From Octopus bimaculoides (Eukaryota), in assembly GCF_001194135.2 (NCBI RefSeq), contig NC_068983.1, positions 55,433,867 to 55,476,534 of the forward strand: a stretch of 42,668 nt of DNA, read 5' to 3'. Within the stretch, counting starts at the first letter, position 1. Each line of letters opens with the position of its first letter. The notes under the pieces are model-generated. The model was given only the letters and a program-made list of their open reading frames with translations. It was not told the DNA's origin and ran no database searches. The translations under genes were made by a program, and so were the position numbers. Shown here in pieces: positions 9,721 to 27,165 of the stretch.

Positions 9721-10282
9721 TAAATCTCATCTCATCTAGGTCGTCCCATGGGACGCCCCAAAGCTGTTTCTACATGTTTTCCCTATTTCTCTCGATCTTC
9801 TATAATTGTTCTCAGCTCTTGTTCTCAGCTCTTCCACACCAGTATCCTCCAGCAAGTTGTCGATATAGCTCATCTTCCTCCTTCCTCTCTTGGTTCTTCC
9901 TTCTGTTGGTTACCAGAGCACTAGCTTGTTAGCAATTTCATCGGTATGTCTGATGCAGTGTCCAGCTAGCCTCATCCTTCTATGCTGTATCTTCAATGTT
10001 ACTTTTGGTAGTCCCTGGTACAAGTGTCGGCAGGAGACATTGAATGCCATTCTAAGTATCCTTATATAATAACCGTCCAACTGTGAGCGTCCATGTTTCA
10101 GCTCCGTATAGAAGAACAGACTCCACTGTTGCCAGAAACACCCTCACTTTCAATTTTCTTGCTAACTTTGAACTCCATATCTTTCTCAATTTATGGTATG
10201 TGCCCCAGGCAAGAGCTTTCCTTGCTACGATGTCTCTTTCAGTACTTTGCGTCCACATACCAAGGTATTTAAAGGAAAGTAG
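9721..10282 (-). mobile_element. 5'-truncated RTE-clade LINE 3' end
   Basis: FKYLG...KLRKIWSSKL...ESVLLYGAETWTLT / LDGYYIRILRMAFNVS...RMRLAGHC...GRRKMSYID. The ORF stops at GGGACGACCTAG and is followed by an (ATGAG)n tail. Confidence 0.85.
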
Positions 10283-10286
10283 ATGA

Positions 10287-10712
10287 TAGGCGTGGTTGTG
10301 TGACAAGAAGCTCGCTTCCCAACCGCATGATTCCGGTTCAGCCCCACTGTATAGCACCTTGGACAAATGTCTTCTACTATGGTCTCGGGTTTTCCAAAGC
10401 CTTGTGAGTGGATTTTGTAAACGGAAATTGAAAGAAGCCCGTCGTGCGTGCATTTGCGCATGTGTGTGTGTGTGTGTGTGTGTGTGTATGCGCGCCTTTC
10501 AGTTTGTACCCCACAACCACTTGACAACCGGTGCTGGTGTATATACGACCCCCGTAACTTAACGGTTCGGCAAAAGGGTTTGATAAAATAAGTACCAAGC
10601 TTTAAAAATTGTGCTGGGGTCGATTCCTTCGACTAAAATTCTTCAAGTCGGTGCCCCAGTATTGCTGCCGTCTAATGACTGAAACAAGTAAAAAATATAA
10701 AATAAAAGATGA
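10287..10712 (+). mobile_element. SINE A
   Basis: Head, (TG)n and tail; abuts the truncated 5' end of the RTE fragment. Confidence 0.8.
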
Positions 10713-17330: not shown

Positions 17331-18964
17331 AACAGTTTATCTTTATCGCAAGACATTACAGCAAAAAACCAACTTCTAAACTAACAAACAAACAATTGAG
17401 AAAAAACAATAACAAAAAAACTGTTGAACAAAATTTAGAAATGCTACAAATGGACGTAGCTTTTCATTACAAACGTTCTATTAAGCTTACATTCATTCAT
17501 GCACACATACGTGCATCACACACACCACGTTCAGACACGCGCCACTCGCACGCGTATCTTTATACACACATACATACATATATACATACATACATACATA
17601 TATATATACATACATACATATATATATACATACATACATATATATATACATACATACATATATATATACATATATATATATATATAGATAGATATAGATA
17701 TATATGTACATGCATATATACACACATATACACATTGGGTCTAATAGTCAAGGCGCTTGGCGAGGAGTTGCAATATAGACTCCGCCAGCACCCGAGTTAA
17801 CAATTTTGCTTGGGAAGAACGGAAGTTGTTTCTTTTTAGAGCGAATGTTGTTGTAAATACCACTGAATCTAAATATTCTGATTGCTATTGTTGCTGTTGT
17901 TTGGTATCTAGATTCTAAAGTAGAATCAATATAAAAACGGAAACGAATAGATATATAGATATATATTATGTGCATAGGAAATAGCATACTAGCAGATTTA
18001 CCACCTATTAAAATATCTTACATACCTTGTATACTCGTATACAAACACATCCACTCTCATATATATATATATATATATATTCGCAATCATGCACGCATAT
18101 ATACTTTAATAATAGATTATTGGTTGTTATTTTAATTTTTTTGTAGATATTTTTAAAAATATATCTCTGGTTACATTCACACGTATTATTGGATTAGTAT
18201 ACTAACTACTAACAGTTATAGACAATGGTAAAACTAAATTTTACTTATCATCTTTAGTTGATATCACCACGATCTATTATGCGCTATAGTTGTACACAGG
18301 TATAAACACACACACGATTATATTGATATGAAGAGAGAAAGAAGGAGAAAAATAATAGAATTGAATACTGAATGAACGAGGAAGATTGAACCGCTAAACA
18401 GGATTAAGAATTCTTCAAACACTACTACAATTGCATCGTATCAAAAACAGACGATAGATGTATGAAGAGGTTTTGTATGCATACGCACGCACACACGCAC
18501 GCACGCATATGTGCACATACACATATATTATAACAGTTAAAAAAAAAAAGCATCCAGTATTGTTATGAAGTTAAGCAAAATTATTTGATATATTTTTTAG
18601 GAGAAAAATAAACAAACATTGTGTTAAAGAATATATATTGAAAGTAAACTATGCAGTGATAGATATTTATAGACTAAATATTAAATGTTATATAGAGTGC
18701 ATTAAGAAACATTAACTAAAACGATAGAAAAATGTGAGAAAGTTCGTTTGAAATTTAGATATGTTGTTGTAATTGGATCAAGCACTACAGAAACCAGGTC
18801 GTTTTTCAGACTGAATATTTCTGTATCAGAATAATTAAGCGTGCGTTTTCACATCGTTGAGGACTAACATATAAAGTATGTGTGGCAGGAAAAGAAAAGA
18901 TGAAGGAGAGGAAAAAAAATGAAAAAAGAAGCCAAATCATTGTTGTTATGATCAGTGTCGGAAA

Positions 18965-19177
18965 CTACCGACCTTTTCCAATGATTTGGTCGCACATCCG
19001 AGGGACGTATTCGCCATGTTCGTCATCATCAGTATACATGTTTGGGACGATATCAACTTCAGTTACACATTGTCGACTATTTTGACATAGACAAGTGAAC
19101 TGGTATTTCAAGGCTTCACCAAGTGCTCTATTCACGTAGACTTTAGCACATACAGCTCCATCGGTTGCACATACCAC
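18965..19177 (-). CDS. aos: Argos/Giant-lens-like protein, last coding exon (module 3)
   Basis: Acceptor ttttttcctag|GTG (phase 0). Encodes VVCATDGAVC...FTCLCQNSRQC...PRMCDQIIGKGR* with 6 Cys. The stop TAG is at 18967-18965. Confidence 0.88.
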   Translation of the reverse strand: MVCATDGAVCAKVYVNRALGEALKYQFTCLCQNSRQCVTEVDIVPNMYTDDDEHGEYVPRMCDQIIGKGR

Positions 19178-19244
19178 CTAGGAAAAAATGAATAAATAAA
19201 GAACATTACTGATATTAAGGTACAAACAATTTTACATTTAATAT

Positions 19245-19661
19245 GGTTTCAAAATTTGGCACAAGATCAGCAGTTTTGAGGTTGTGGGTGTTCAAATGGT
19301 ACTTATTTTATCGACCCCGAAAGACGAAAGGCCATGTCAACCTTGACAGAATTTGAACCCAGAACTTAAAGAACCAGAATAAATGCTACTAAGCATTTTG
19401 TTCGACTCGCTTAACAATTTTACCAGCACGCCGATATAACATTGCCATTAATATACATAATGGATGAAACCAGTGTTACCCGGTCCATTAATCGCTTCAC
19501 CACGATAACGGTTTCAAATTTTGGCACAAGGCCAGCAATTTCTGGGCTGGGAGTAACTCGAATACATCCTCGGCGACATTTGAACCAGGAACGTAAAGAC
19601 GGTCGAAATGCAGCTGAGCATTTTGCCCGGCGTCCTACCAATTCTGCCAGCTCGCCGCCTT
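19245..19661 (-). mobile_element. Two SINE B copies in the last intron
   Basis: About 19245-19420 and 19510-19661, both matching the B consensus. Confidence 0.75.
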
Positions 19662-19873
19662 ACTCCATAACAATATTAAACTTCAAAGGACACACGTTCT
19701 CCTTGTTTGTCTGTATTACGACCATTTCCAGAGGAAAGAGACAAACAATAAAAGACAAAAGAGAGCAAAAGACCTGAAAATGTGAACAACTCAGAGTGCC
19801 ATATTGTGATAAGTTACCACTTATTCTCTATATTGTTGTTATTGTTTTGATTACTCAAGCTCAAGTTTTCTTT

Positions 19874-20077
19874 CAGTTCTATATTTAAGAGATGAGGAAT
19901 TATGTACATTATTTACATTTGACGGATATTTGTCCTCATCTTGTTTGTTGTTAACACGTTTCAGCTGATATACCCTCCAGCCTTCATCAGGCGTCTTGGA
20001 GAAATTTCGAACCTGGGTTCTCATTCCTAAGGTATTTTTCGATATCATCATCATTATTATTATTATTATTATTATTA

Positions 20078-20125
<48 letters not shown>

Positions 20126-20197
20126 TCACTGCCTGGAATCTAACTCGGAATCTTGGAGGTTAGTAGCCCGCGCTCTTAACCACTACACCATATGCCC
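19874..20197 (-). mobile_element. SINE family D: tRNA-like head, (AAT)n, hammerhead-bearing tail (copy 1)
   Basis: Head GGGCATATGGTGTAGTGGTTAAGAGCGCGGGCTACTAAC with a B-box-like GAGTTAGATTCC. The tail has GACGC-CTGATGA-AGGCTGG..TCAGCT-GAAAC-GTGTT and lacks 3 nt at the cleavage site. Confidence 0.8.
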
Positions 20198-20199
20198 AT

Positions 20200-20296
20200 G
20201 GGCATATGACGTAGGGTGGAGGGTATATCAGCCGAAACGTTGTGTTAACAACAAACAAGATGAGGACAAATATCCGTCAAATGTAAATAATGTACA
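20200..20296 (+). mobile_element. SINE family D: inverted, internally deleted partial copy
   Basis: The first 15 nt of the head are fused to the tail GGAGGGTATATCAGCCGAAACGTTGTGTTAACAAC...AATAATGTACA, head-to-head with copy 1. Confidence 0.75.
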
Positions 20297-20855
20297 AGTT
20301 TGCTTTGATCAAACAGGCCTACGATGAATAGCATTTCAGCAGCGACTATACTGTTTCTTAGGAATAGCCACAATTACATTATTTTATGTGTCTTTCCCGA
20401 ATTTAAGTCGGTAGTGCATGATTTTTAAGGGGTTTTGAATACTATTTTTTGCTAGTTAAGTCATCACAAAGATGGCTTGACTATTATCCTTCAGAAATGT
20501 GGATTCTTCATTCGACTAAGCAGAATGACAGAATACTGCAAGTACTTGAATGATAGAACTCAGCTAGATGCTCGTTTATACTTGAAGCCAGACAATAACA
20601 ACAATATTCCTTTGAATATTGTTGTGTCGACGCTCCCAAGCGAAGAAGTAGGATCGCCCGAGACATATAAATAAAGGTAGTCTAGCCGTGGTAGGTGAGT
20701 TTGAGTAGCTGTTGAGTAGCAGTCGGTCAGTGGTTGAGTAGAGATCATCCGAAGGTGCTAGATAGCAGTAGCTTGAGACATAACAAATATATTTCTATAC
20801 ATTTCGCCTGTTCAAACATAAAGAATAAAATGTAAGCTACAGTCGTTGTACGTAC

Positions 20856-21067
20856 CTTTTTACAGCGATATTCATAGATCCAGAGGTTATTTCGTTTCTC
20901 CCAACCTCTGAGGTAGAAAATGTTGTTCTTGCATCTGCATCTCTCCTCTCTCATATGGATATGCCAGCCATTAACCTCAGTCTCCATCAAAGCAGCAACT
21001 TCGTCGTCATTGCAAATCCTTTCAGGCATTATAGGACCACACAATTTGTACTGAACTATCATGTCCA
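20856..21067 (-). CDS. aos: Argos/Giant-lens-like protein, middle exon (end of module 1 plus module 2)
   Basis: Acceptor tttgtgtag|TG (phase 1; T+TG=Leu) and donor AAG|GTACGT (phase 0). Encodes DMIVQYKLCGPIMPERICNDD...REERCRCKNNIFYL...IYEYRCKK, which parallels Drosophila Argos HYKMCQPVHKLPVC...HCRCPRNSVTYL...YLFAC (recalled from memory). Confidence 0.88.
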
Positions 21068-21341
21068 CTACACAAATAAGAGAAATCAAGAAAAGAAATG
21101 CATAAATATTGGCTGAAAACGAATGAACAGTGCAATGCGTGTAATATAAGCGTATGATGGTTTGTGATAGAGTCACAAGGTCGGCAATCCTCGTAGGAGA
21201 TGTCTAATCGACTAAATCGATATTTAGTTGTACTTGAATTGTATTCAATGTATCGACCCCGGAGAGATTAAAATCGGAGTTGATCTCGCCGTGAATTTTG
21301 TTTATCATATTCTTTACTCTTTTACACTTTTACTTGTTTCA

Positions 21342-22626
21342 AAACATTAATGAGATGAAATGGATGATAAATATGATGGTATAATGAGAGAAGGCAAAAG
21401 CCGCCCGCCGAACTTTGCTTCTCTATAACACTGTTCTTTATAAAATTAAATTTTCACATTGAGGCTATGAACCTCGTACATAAAAAGTCATAAATTAAGG
21501 TATTTGCCTCTTACGATTTTTCATTACACAATATGAGGCTCTCGTCCTCTTAGGTTTTTTCGCCCGATATAGCCTTCGCTTCTCTCAAGCAAAACGATGG
21601 GTCTGGGTCGGGCCACTTTTCAATACTGAATTCGCCGAGGGGGAAGGAATTCACCNNNNNNNNNNNNNNNNNNNNNNNNNNNNNNNNNNNNNNNNNNNNN
21701 NNNNNNNNNNNNNNNNNNNNNNNNNNNNNNNNNNNNNNNNNNNNNNNNNNNNNNNNNNNNNNNNNNNNNNNNNNNNNNNNNNNNNNNNNNNNNNNNNNNN
21801 NNNNNNNNNNNNNNNNNNNNNNNNNNNNNNNNNNNNNNNNNNNNNNNNNNNNNNNNNNNNNNNNNNNNNNNNNNNNNNNNNNNNNNNNNNNNNNNNNNNN
21901 NNNNNNNNNNNNNNNNNNNNNNNNNNNNNNNNNNNNNNNNNNNNNNNNNNNNNNNNNNNNNNNNNNNNNNNNNNNNNNNNNNNNTCCTCCTCCCCTACGA
22001 TTTTCGGTGGCCAACCATTGTTGCCCACCTTCTTCCTTTTTTTTCCTTTTTTCGAGGAGGTTTCCACCTCCTCGACTTCCTCCGTCTCTCCCTCCACTGG
22101 GGGAGCGGGGGTAACAACATTTGTTAACTGTTCCAGGACCTTACTCTGGTCCTGGGGACAGTCTTTCTTGATATGACCGGGCTTCAGACACCGGTGGCAC
22201 TTGGGTTTACGTCCCTCAAGAATTACCGGATATTTCTGGCCGGCCATCCTCAAAAAATCCGGAAATACCAGATCCCTGGCTGATTGGGTCCACAGGGTCA
22301 AAACCGCTTTTGCCCCAACCCAATCAACTGTAGGTAACAGTTTCATATTTAAGAGCTTGGCTCCACTGCCCCCCAGCCCCAGTCGGATAGTATCCTCTAT
22401 CCAATCAGGTTCTATACCGGGTGGCAGCCCACAGATCCAAGTCCTAGTTAATTTCTTCCCACAGTATGTGGGAAGAAACAGAATTTTTTCCCCTTCTAAG
22501 GGCTGGCTCGCAAACCTGCGAGCCACCTCAGGGGTGTCAAATAGCAACCAAACCGTCGCGTATTTTACACCCCTTGCCATAAACTTAATAGTTGGCAGAT
22601 ATTCTGCTAACTCTTTTTCAATTTCG
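21342..22626 (-). mobile_element. L1/Tx1-type ORF1 cassette (RRM-like region plus CCHC zinc knuckle); no ORF2 visible
   Basis: The ORF from 22580 is open up to the gap at 21984. It contains WICGLPPGI, VILEGRKPK and CHRCLKPGHIKKDC (C-X2-C-X4-H-X4-C, 22199-22158), then an acidic/basic tail. Only a 329-N gap and about 310 bp remain before the element ends. Confidence 0.75.
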
Positions 22627-23080
22627 ACTTACCACACAGCCACTTCTACGCCTTAACTTCTCATGTCTTTTACTCGTGTCTTTTACTTATGTCAGATGGA
22701 GCGATCTCTTTGTCGAAGTATACCACGAACCAGTACATAATACACCTCACAAAGTCGGATTTATTCTACAAATTCATAACTATCATATGATTGGAATGAA
22801 TGCTTTGACAAGCTGAGTGGCTCTAAAGATTCAACTAAACTACGTAATACCATGGATTTATAACAAATCCATATAACAAAGAGTGGTCTGCGCCTGAAGA
22901 ACGTGTTTGGATTTTTAGACACGTGCAACTATTAGTAGCTCCTGGTTTGAGTTTCGTTGTCCTTGCACGAACCGTCTACGAGGAGTTAACGAACTTAAAA
23001 AGACGTAACGGACAGAGAAACATCACTCTCACTCAAATTTACAATGGGATAAAACCAAATGAGATTACGGTAATACTTAC

Positions 23081-23267
23081 ATCGTTTGAAATGCTGCCAG
23101 GTAAATGAATACCTGTCGTGTTCCGACCATGTTGCCGAGCAGTTGTCACAATCACAATTTTTGCCTTCATCGACAATGAAATTATCTTCTTCGCCGTCTT
23201 TGTATTGCATCAGGGTCCTGCACACATGCGCATTTGACTTACACGGGGGATCTGTGTCACGTTTGTG
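23081..23267 (-). CDS. aos: Argos/Giant-lens-like secreted Cys-rich protein, first visible coding exon (module 1)
   Basis: Acceptor ttttgtttccag|CAC (phase 0) and donor CGA T|GTAAGT (phase 1). The 187 nt encode HKRDTDPPCKSNAHVCRTLMQYKDGEEDNFIVDEGKNCDCDNCSATWSEHDRYSFTWQHFKR. The upstream signal-peptide exon was not identified. Confidence 0.85.
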
Positions 23268-23352: not shown

Positions 23353-23589
23353 AACATATATTGTTGTATTTTGGGACGGTCATTTTTTTTTTCAAATAAA
23401 CACACGCACTATATATTTGTTCTTCACTCGTTTATTACTGTTCTTATATTTTAAAATTTTAACTCATGCCTATGTCTAATGTGAAAAAAATAAGAACAGT
23501 AATAAACGAGTGAAGAGCAAATATATAGTGAGTGTGTTTATTTGGCAAAAAAAAAAAAATGACCGTCCCAAAATACAACAATATATGTT
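23353..23589. repeat. Intronic inverted repeat (hairpin)
   Basis: Arms 23353-23447 and 23490-23589, with a spacer of about 42 nt. Confidence 0.9.
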
Positions 23590-26736: not shown

Positions 26737-27165
26737 ATAGGTTCTCAAAGTGGGCTCTACCGCTCTCCGGTGGGCGTTGAGACGGTGCTGGNNNNNNNNN
26801 NNNNNNNNNNNNNNNNNNNNNNNNNNNNNNNNNNNNNNNNNNNNNNNNNNNNNNNNNNNNNNNNNNNNNNNNNNNNNNNNNNNNNNNNNNNNNNNNNNNN
26901 NNNNNNNNNNGGGGGGGGGTTAGAGAAAAAGGAGGCGTTGGGAGGAAGGCAGTGAATTGAGAAACGCTATGAATTTATTATAATATTATTATAGTATTGT
27001 ATATATATTATATAATATTATATTAGGTATCAAACGATTCATAGTATATGTAAATTAGTAAAGTATGAAATATGTATTTATGCATAAAAATAGAGGTGTG
27101 GCGCTGAGGGTATTATGTGGCCATGAGAGGGGTGGGCGGTGGCCCAAAAAGTTTGAGAATCTCTG
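26737..27165. mobile_element. hAT-like MITE remnant(s)
   Basis: Left GGTTCTCAAAGTGGG, with right-end-like TTGAGAAACGCT (about 26960) and AAGTTTGAGAATCTCTG (about 27160). No TSD was found and the region contains a gap. Confidence 0.3.

Follow-up and report, generated by a model that had tools for sequence, protein, structure and literature searches.

Argos is the textbook antagonist that sequesters a ligand instead of blocking a receptor; in Drosophila, its three domains clamp the epidermal growth factor (EGF) domain of Spitz. To our knowledge, Argos was long known from arthropods only. The gene described here encodes a remote relative of Argos in Octopus bimaculoides and lies on the minus strand of a 42,668-nucleotide (nt) stretch of contig NC_068983.1 (positions 55,433,867 to 55,476,534; hereafter the window). 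A first-pass annotation, made from the letters of the window alone, had proposed an Argos/Giant-lens-like gene of three exons at window positions 18965-23267.

The structure of a cone-snail macro-conotoxin has been solved and resembles domains 1 and 2 of Argos, and the domain was named "2FTX" (Khilji et al. 2025, Protein Sci., PMC12514838). The same work describes about 1800 2FTX proteins of protostomes, sorted into 12 clusters; many of them have three domains and are termed "Argos-like", and Capitella R7U7Q8 is pictured as such in Fig. 6b of that paper. Argos is the sole 2FTX protein with an established function, and the regulation of the EGF receptor (EGFR) by Argos-like 2FTX proteins is presented there as speculation only (PMC12514838). 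The endogenous Pomacea/Conus gene has four exons: exon 1 encodes the signal peptide, exon 2 and the beginning of exon 3 encode domain 1, exon 3 also encodes domain 2, and exon 4 encodes domain 3. The intron phases of the two gene sets that were compared are 0,1,0 and 0,2,0 (PMC12514838). The expression of the Aplysia member peaks in the pedal ganglia, with the salivary gland as the negative control (PMC12514838). The SLPTX11 venom proteins of centipedes are also Argos-like (PMC12514838), and those with three domains and eight disulfides are reported to be inhibitors of K+ channels (PMC4379518).

The octopus locus is an expressed, single-copy gene for a secreted, disulfide-rich, three-domain protein, and the coordinates of its parts are collected in Table 1. 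Joining the three exons found in the window gives a single 612-nt frame that ends in TAG and encodes 203 amino acids, and all of the exons are bordered by AG acceptors and GT donors. The compatible phases, the 203 amino acids, and the 16 cysteines of the first-pass annotation were thereby reproduced. A transcript contig of 2122 nt (L003) matches the three exon blocks with identities of 100%, 99.5%, and 99.9%, respectively, and has nothing between the blocks. The limits of RNA coverage coincide exactly with positions 23081-23267 for coding exon 2, where the identity to L003 is 100%. Among the raw RNA reads of run X24, 56 span the junction 23081/21067 and 53 span the junction 20856/19177, with zero coverage in the introns; at the last exon, these 53 reads continue beyond position 19179 with the sequence of exon 3. 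The same junction sequences are present in contigs of seven further RNA runs, X1, X2, X4, X8, X9, and X12 among them, and both of the junctions that had been proposed for a check against RNA are therefore supported, by eight or more runs in all. The assembly gap at positions 21656-21984 is purely intronic and the mRNA passes straight from 23081 to 21067, so no coding sequence is concealed in the gap. Expression is very uneven between samples, with a contig depth of ~1940 in X8 versus ~108 in X9 and a raw-read depth of ~70 in X24 versus ~3 in X23.

The product of the three exons is identical to MetaClust entry UPI0006957755 and also matches O. bimaculoides XP_014788675 along the whole length of XP_014788675. 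The O. vulgaris and O. sinensis proteins differ from it at a few residues. Coding exon 2 encodes the end of a pro-region (HKR) and most of the first two-finger domain, with Cys 1-5 and the motif CDC. The last strand of domain 1 and the sixth Cys are encoded by coding exon 3, which continues with the whole of domain 2 (Cys 7-10, including CRC). Domain 3 (Cys 11-16, with CLC) and the C-terminus DQIIGKGR, which is invariant across cephalopods, come from the last coding exon. The domains were mapped onto the exons using the strands of an AlphaFold2 (AF2) model and the positions of the cysteines. The 16 cysteines of the 203 amino acids are distributed 5+5+6 by exon and 6+4+6 by fold module, with one CxC motif in each module; the 6+4+6 arrangement noted at first pass holds when the count is made by fold module. 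The description "roughly one exon per module" is likewise accurate, given the portion of module 1 that spills into the middle exon. The mature region of ~200 amino acids is modeled as three consecutive 2FTX beta-domains, in which the 16 cysteines presumably form eight disulfides.

The 203 amino acids are not the entire product, and the earlier gene model is incomplete at its 5' end: transcripts add an exon for a signal peptide. A total of 21 X24 reads link position 23267 to an upstream exon that ends in ...GATGAAGATGACCTACCACGAAGTGGCAG. This exon supplies 46 codons in L003 with the translation MDAKYRIVLVFLILAVSIRELRVAAAEYEYDDGIYDDEDDLPRSGR. The full precursor deduced from the transcripts has 249 amino acids and is encoded by four exons with coding lengths of 138, 187, 212, and 213 nt and intron phases of 0, 1, and 0. 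Exon 1 starts with MDAKYRIVLVFLILAVSIRELRVAAA... and includes a hydrophobic core of 12 residues, and a helix is predicted by AF2 for residues 3-27. It reads as an exon for an N-terminal signal peptide, by which the protein would be secreted. An acidic, Tyr-rich pro-region, EYEYDDGIYDDEDD, is followed by RHKR just before the first Cys, and the HKR portion is encoded at window positions 23259-23267. This arrangement is conserved among cephalopods, with RSRR and RRKR as the counterparts of RHKR in the other species. These features of the pro-region suggest tyrosine sulfation and cleavage by a proprotein convertase. Neither tblastn nor blastn with the transcript contig located exon 1 in the sequenced part of the window, and it is located either farther upstream or in a gap between positions 26792 and 41180.

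The signal-peptide exon is missing from the public models XP_014788675 (O. bimaculoides), XP_029655827 (O. sinensis), and CAI9719017 (O. vulgaris). Two of these models have 184 amino acids and begin at an internal Met, and the third, of 207 amino acids, has a false start at MNVE. The proteins P0008, P0005, and P0002 are orthologues of full length that include a signal peptide. The corrected precursor of 249 amino acids replaces the three truncated public Octopus gene models.

Homologues were collected by searching exhaustively with phmmer, using the full-length cephalopod protein P0002 as the query, and 38 cluster representatives were returned at E<=1e-3. The named representatives are all spiralian and all "uncharacterized", and they derive from a chiton, bivalves, gastropods, nemerteans, annelids, and the flatworm Macrostomum. 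The taxa of the family include Liolophura, Potamilus/Sinanodonta, Bulinus, Haliotis, Pomacea, and Elysia, together with Lineus, Tubulanus, Capitella, Ridgeia, Paralvinella, and Macrostomum. Capitella R7U7Q8 (P0026) was found with E=4.8e-22 and the Pomacea canaliculata LOC112562116 cluster (P0038) with E=1.1e-10. A word-index homologue search returned two cephalopod clusters only, and the profile version of this search added almost nothing. In an alignment of 21 spiralian homologues, 13 cysteines are invariant and 3 are nearly so, and a few aromatic positions are conserved as well. By sequence similarity, the octopus protein is placed in a conserved family of molluscs, annelids, nemerteans, and flatworms.

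The number of family members per species was also noted. Two loci of the nemertean Tubulanus polymorphus, LOC141910135 and LOC141910142, have close locus numbers that suggest neighbouring paralogues, and family members occur at several loci in Sinanodonta woodiana. The octopods are represented by a single cluster in the protein searches, and a second gene copy was not found within the 42.7-kb window. For the mature region of the octopus protein and that of the species of P0002, the proportion of nonsynonymous differences (pN) is 0.11 and the proportion of synonymous differences (pS) is 0.89 (saturated). Purifying selection across this deep cephalopod split, where the amino acid identity is 83%, is strong, and the open reading frame (ORF) is intact in octopods, in Argonauta, and in a second cephalopod lineage.

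The octopus protein shares the sequence family, the signal peptide, the three domains, and the 16-Cys pattern with the Argos-like 2FTX group, as represented by Capitella R7U7Q8, Aplysia XP_005110430, and Pomacea/Conus. The layout of exons and domains is that of the four-exon gastropod gene, and the intron phases of 0,1,0 are those of one of the two published structures. The octopus protein is distinguished from this group by the acidic, Tyr-rich pro-region ending in RXKR and by a probable recoding site. Judged by its sequence, the octopus gene falls among the "protostome Argos-like 2FTX proteins" of 2025, a group whose molluscan members were first described in that year. The idea of Argos-like proteins in molluscs is not new, as it was published in 2025. 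A cephalopod member is not mentioned in the main text of that paper (PMC12514838), and literature searches by locus identifier and by "Argos-like" together with octopus returned nothing relevant.

Two groups of venom proteins can be set beside the octopus protein. The centipede SLPTX11 proteins (such as kappa-scoloptoxin Ssd1b and U-scoloptoxin(11)-Ssd2a) resemble it in mass (about 22 kDa), in having eight disulfides, and in their three 2FTX domains (PMC4379518, PMC12514838). When the two are compared by description, SLPTX11 is expressed in the venom gland, diversifying, often truncated, and reported to act on K+ channels, whereas the octopus gene is conserved and apparently single-copy. The cone-snail macro-conotoxins (Tx33.1 and the MLSML/MMLFM superfamilies) share the domain fold (PMC12514838). 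They have two domains, lack domain 3, and have intron phases of 0,2,0, in contrast to the three domains and the phases of 0,1,0 of the octopus gene. Direct kinship with conotoxin Tx33.1 was considered and rejected; no sequence relation is detectable (hhalign probability of 12.7%) and Tx33.1 is outside the significant Foldseek hits.

The relationship to Argos itself was detected using profiles and a structural model. Searches with the 203-amino-acid sequence alone gave nothing useful in Pfam (best match to DUF5731, E=0.7) and no match in the PDB. When the profile of the 21 spiralian homologues was compared with the PDB using hmmsearch, chain 3c9a_A, "Protein giant-lens", was matched with E=4.3e-8 across domains 2-3, including the last Cys. 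In addition, Argos domain 1 weakly matched domain 3 of the profile, as an internal repeat. The set of true Argos proteins comprised 120 listed hits, of which 16 were aligned. Among the matches listed, all 120 Argos proteins carry PF11581, and every one with a named source is from an arthropod, ranging from chelicerates to insects. The hhalign comparison of the spiralian profile with the 16 arthropod Argos sequences gave a probability of 97.1% and E=5.1e-11 across 153 columns that extend from the first to the third domain. The octopus cysteines at 55/62/84/86/89/118/127/152/154/177/182/189/208/210/216 are in register with the Argos chain cysteines at 29/35/50/52/58/80/89/114/116/143/151/157/178/180/186, respectively. 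The last Cys, residue 241 of the octopus protein, pairs with residue 213 of Argos in the hidden Markov model (HMM) alignment. The number of conserved cysteines is exactly 16 in each family, and all 16 are invariant in the Argos alignment.

The AF2 model built on the alignment has a predicted local distance difference test score (pLDDT) of 87 and a predicted TM-score (pTM) of 0.73. It begins with a signal helix, after which its structure is all-beta; a pro-region modeled as disordered precedes the three domains of beta-hairpins. The sole Foldseek hits in the PDB at E<=1e-3 are four Argos chains (3c9a, 3cgu), each with a probability of 1.00. The E values of these matches range from 2.7e-5 to 2.5e-4 over about 220 aligned columns. 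The profile match and the structural match to Argos that were suggested as checks at first pass were thus obtained with the family profile, hhalign, and Foldseek, and the single sequence alone fails to provide them.

Several results weigh against a close relationship to Argos or an Argos-type activity. The Pfam model of Argos, PF11581, is matched by neither the 203- nor the 249-amino-acid protein even at E<=10. Only 1 of the 21 family members touches PF11581, below threshold (E=7e-4), and DUF5731 is matched weakly, also below threshold, by 7 of the 21, which is oftener than the Argos model. The octopus and Argos sequences are about 17-21% identical, and the shared residues lie mainly in the scaffold. 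As a whole, the model superposes poorly on Argos, with TM-scores of 0.33-0.40 and a root-mean-square deviation (rmsd) of about 10 A; the domains therefore match those of Argos, but their mutual arrangement does not, and the model does not reproduce the geometry of the clamp. At NCBI, the Haliotis orthologue is named "U-scoloptoxin(11)-Ssd2a-like", after centipede SLPTX11 and not after Argos, which hints at a paralogue lineage of 2FTX proteins rather than an Argos orthologue.

From these alignments, the octopus protein is assessed as a remote, superfamily-level homologue of arthropod Argos/Giant-lens. The kinship is genuine; orthology is not demonstrated. The earlier assignment to the Argos family is upheld by the family profile (E=4.3e-8), by hhalign, and by Foldseek, and it is narrowed by the unmatched PF11581 to that of a superfamily-level relative. 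The features shared with the arthropod Argos proteins (PF11581; PDB 3C9A and 3CGU) are secretion, three two-finger beta-domains, and 16 cysteines in register. Fly Argos has a 119-residue insertion in domain 1 and a long, flexible N-terminal region, both of which are absent from the octopus protein.

By analogy with Argos, the function that we favor, by a modest degree of confidence, is that of an EGF-ligand sink, a diffusible antagonist of the EGFR pathway. The mature octopus protein would be released to the extracellular space, where it would bind a small, disulfide-rich growth-factor module. The likeliest target would be an EGF-family ligand of the molluscan EGFR, and less ligand would then be left for the receptor. 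In molluscs, the mechanism of Argos is possible since EGFR and EGF ligands are present in these animals (PMC4914847). The gene structure, its expression, the secretory features, the fold, and the homology are established by the results above; the ligand, the geometry of the clamp, and the biological role would follow from the analogy. The mechanism is one that we infer, because the clamp geometry is not reproduced in the model and three-domain 2FTX proteins of centipedes are reported to be K+ channel inhibitors. A role for the octopus gene in the patterning of the eye or brain, as raised at first pass, is speculation.

The same fold may instead serve another target, an explanation that we regard as possible though distinctly less probable than the ligand sink. 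The protein would then be a secreted binder of the 2FTX/Ly6-uPAR-like type with a partner other than an EGF ligand, such as an ion channel, the ectodomain of a receptor, or another module resembling a growth factor. Its role would be that of a modulator in neural or glandular settings, and not that of an antagonist of the EGFR pathway. The remoteness of the Argos relationship, which is carried by scaffold residues, is consistent with this explanation, as are the predicted inter-domain arrangement that does not superpose on Argos and the scoloptoxin(11)-like name of the Haliotis orthologue. The reported inhibition of K+ channels by three-domain SLPTX11 proteins (PMC4379518) and the fact that a function is known for Argos alone among the ~1800 protostome 2FTX proteins in 12 clusters (PMC12514838) point in the same direction. 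However, the sole superfamily member with a known endogenous function traps an EGF ligand. All three domains are kept in the octopus protein, including domain 3, which is cited as required for Spitz binding (PMC12514838), and the family is old and single- or low-copy, resembling a core signalling component.

The first-pass annotation had also named Argos-like proteins among invertebrate venom components, and this is right for centipede SLPTX11 (PMC12514838) and is echoed in the name of the Haliotis protein. It is very unlikely that the octopus protein is itself a venom or salivary-gland toxin delivered to prey, even though 2FTX proteins have been recruited into venoms twice, in the conotoxin superfamilies of cone snails and in SLPTX11 of centipedes, and the unevenness of expression from sample to sample (X8 versus X9, X24 versus X23) would fit such a role. 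Toxin families usually diversify between cysteines (PMC12514838), whereas the octopus gene is conserved under strong purifying selection (pN of 0.11, identity of 83%), which argues against a venom role. No tandem copy is present in the 42.7-kb window, there is one octopod cluster, domain 3 is kept in the octopus protein and is absent from the conotoxins, and no sequence relation to Tx33.1 is detectable. Together with the conservation, these points favor an endogenous part in signalling over that of a toxin. In addition, the Aplysia member is neural, with the salivary gland as the negative control (PMC12514838). A mention of "scoloptoxin" in a paper on octopus salivary glands refers to SSD14, which is an unrelated protein. 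That the locus is no functional gene, being either an open frame that arose by chance or a pseudogene in decay and interrupted by the assembly gap, might have been suggested by the truncated public models without a signal peptide and by the gap inside the locus; this is refuted by the spliced, abundant transcripts in many runs and is contradicted by the intronic position of the gap, the intact ORF in octopods, Argonauta, and the second cephalopod lineage, and the purifying selection.

A candidate site of adenosine-to-inosine (A-to-I) recoding was detected within the coding sequence. Recoding of this type is common in coleoids. The genome has T on the plus strand at position 21032, which corresponds to A in the mRNA at the first base of the codon for Ile121. 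This residue is positioned between Cys118 and Cys127, at the junction of domains 1 and 2. G is found at 21032 in 45 of the 56 reads of X24 and at a depth of 1134 out of 1423 in X2, or about 80% in both runs. The contigs of X1, X4, and X8 have G only, those of X9 and X12 have A only, and the transcript-derived protein P0008 carries Val at residue 121. In five DNA or DNA-like runs from four studies, only the genomic base appears and there is no assembly bubble at this position, with the raw DNA reads being too shallow to cover 21032. For comparison, an ordinary heterozygous A>G single-nucleotide polymorphism (SNP) at 18912 in the 3' untranslated region (UTR) has a frequency of 45% in the same RNA sample and is seen in one RNA run only. 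The pattern at 21032 is probably due to tissue-dependent A-to-I editing that changes Ile to Val; a population SNP retains a small share of the probability. Minimum free energy folding of the mRNA and the pre-mRNA around 21032 gave no helix at the site, and no editing-complementary structure was identified.

Table 1. Positions of the parts of the octopus Argos-like gene and of other elements in the window (window coordinates unless stated otherwise)
Feature	Position	Strand	Description	Basis
Exon 1, coding part	L003:83-220 (off the sequenced window)		138 nt, 46 codons; signal peptide and pro-region	
Coding exon 2	23081..23267	-	187 nt; phase 0 in, 1 out	AG/GT sites, frame, RNA coverage
Intron between coding exons 2 and 3	21068..23080	-	holds N gap 21656-21984	no RNA coverage next to the exons
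Coding exon 3	20856..21067	-	212 nt; phase 1 in, 0 out	splice sites, L003, junction reads
Probable A-to-I editing site	21032	-	mRNA A read as G; codon ATA to GTA; Ile121Val of the 249-amino-acid precursor	
Intron between coding exons 3 and 4	19178..20855	-	holds foldback repeat and dispersed repeat	
Last exon, coding part	18965..19177	-	213 nt; includes TAG stop at 18967-18965	frame, L003, junction reads
3' UTR	17676..18964	-	at least 1.29 kb; continuous with last coding exon	L003 at 99.9% over 19179-17676; RNA depth unbroken to 17800
Retroelement gag-like ORF with CCHC zinc knuckle	about 21985-22580	-		zf-CCHC PF00098, E=1.9e-4
Foldback (MITE-like) inverted repeat	arms 19903-19989 and 20207-20296		in intron 20855-19178	
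Dispersed repeat segments	20732-20785 (intron) and 23353-23392 (upstream)			many unrelated high-depth RNA contigs of several runs
ORF fragment with motif LLYGAETWTL	10052-10453	-		DUF6451 match, E=4e-7

Other elements of the window are listed in Table 1 together with the parts of the gene. The retroelement gag-like ORF is in the same orientation as the gene, within the intron at 23080-21068, and its downstream part is removed by the N gap. The arms of the foldback repeat, which resembles a miniature inverted-repeat transposable element (MITE), have 55 nt of perfect complementarity and surround an (ATT)n microsatellite at about 20040-20130. The repeat would form a long hairpin in the pre-mRNA, in the intron downstream of 21032. 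The segments at 20732-20785 and 23353-23392 are dispersed transcribed repeats outside the Argos-like mRNA. Within the 3' UTR, homopolymer length variation is seen at 18538, and variants at 18489/18493 are found beside a CA-repeat at 18486-18510. The ORF fragment at 10052-10453 is a decayed retrotransposon copy; its motif is one that we take to be typical of the C-terminal part of the reverse transcriptases of long interspersed nuclear elements (LINEs). Microsatellites and sequence of low complexity, with eight N gaps, make up much of the remaining window, and the Rfam and tRNA scans were empty.

The 2025 proposal of protostome-wide Argos-like proteins included no assay of any of them (PMC12514838), and the octopus gene provides a clean test case. 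It is single-copy, strongly conserved, and highly expressed, in an animal with a large brain and tractable embryos. The octopus gene extends the published family to cephalopods and adds corrected annotations and a candidate editing site; alone, it changes no established picture. In the most far-reaching version, an EGF-ligand trap would be used in the nervous system, sequestration would be ancestral in protostomes, and the hinge between domains 1 and 2 would be recoded (I121V) by tissue-dependent editing to give two versions of the protein, a combination that is unlikely as a whole. If an EGF-ligand trap in the nervous system were true, sequestration would be an ancestral protostome means of tuning EGFR signalling and not an invention of the arthropods.

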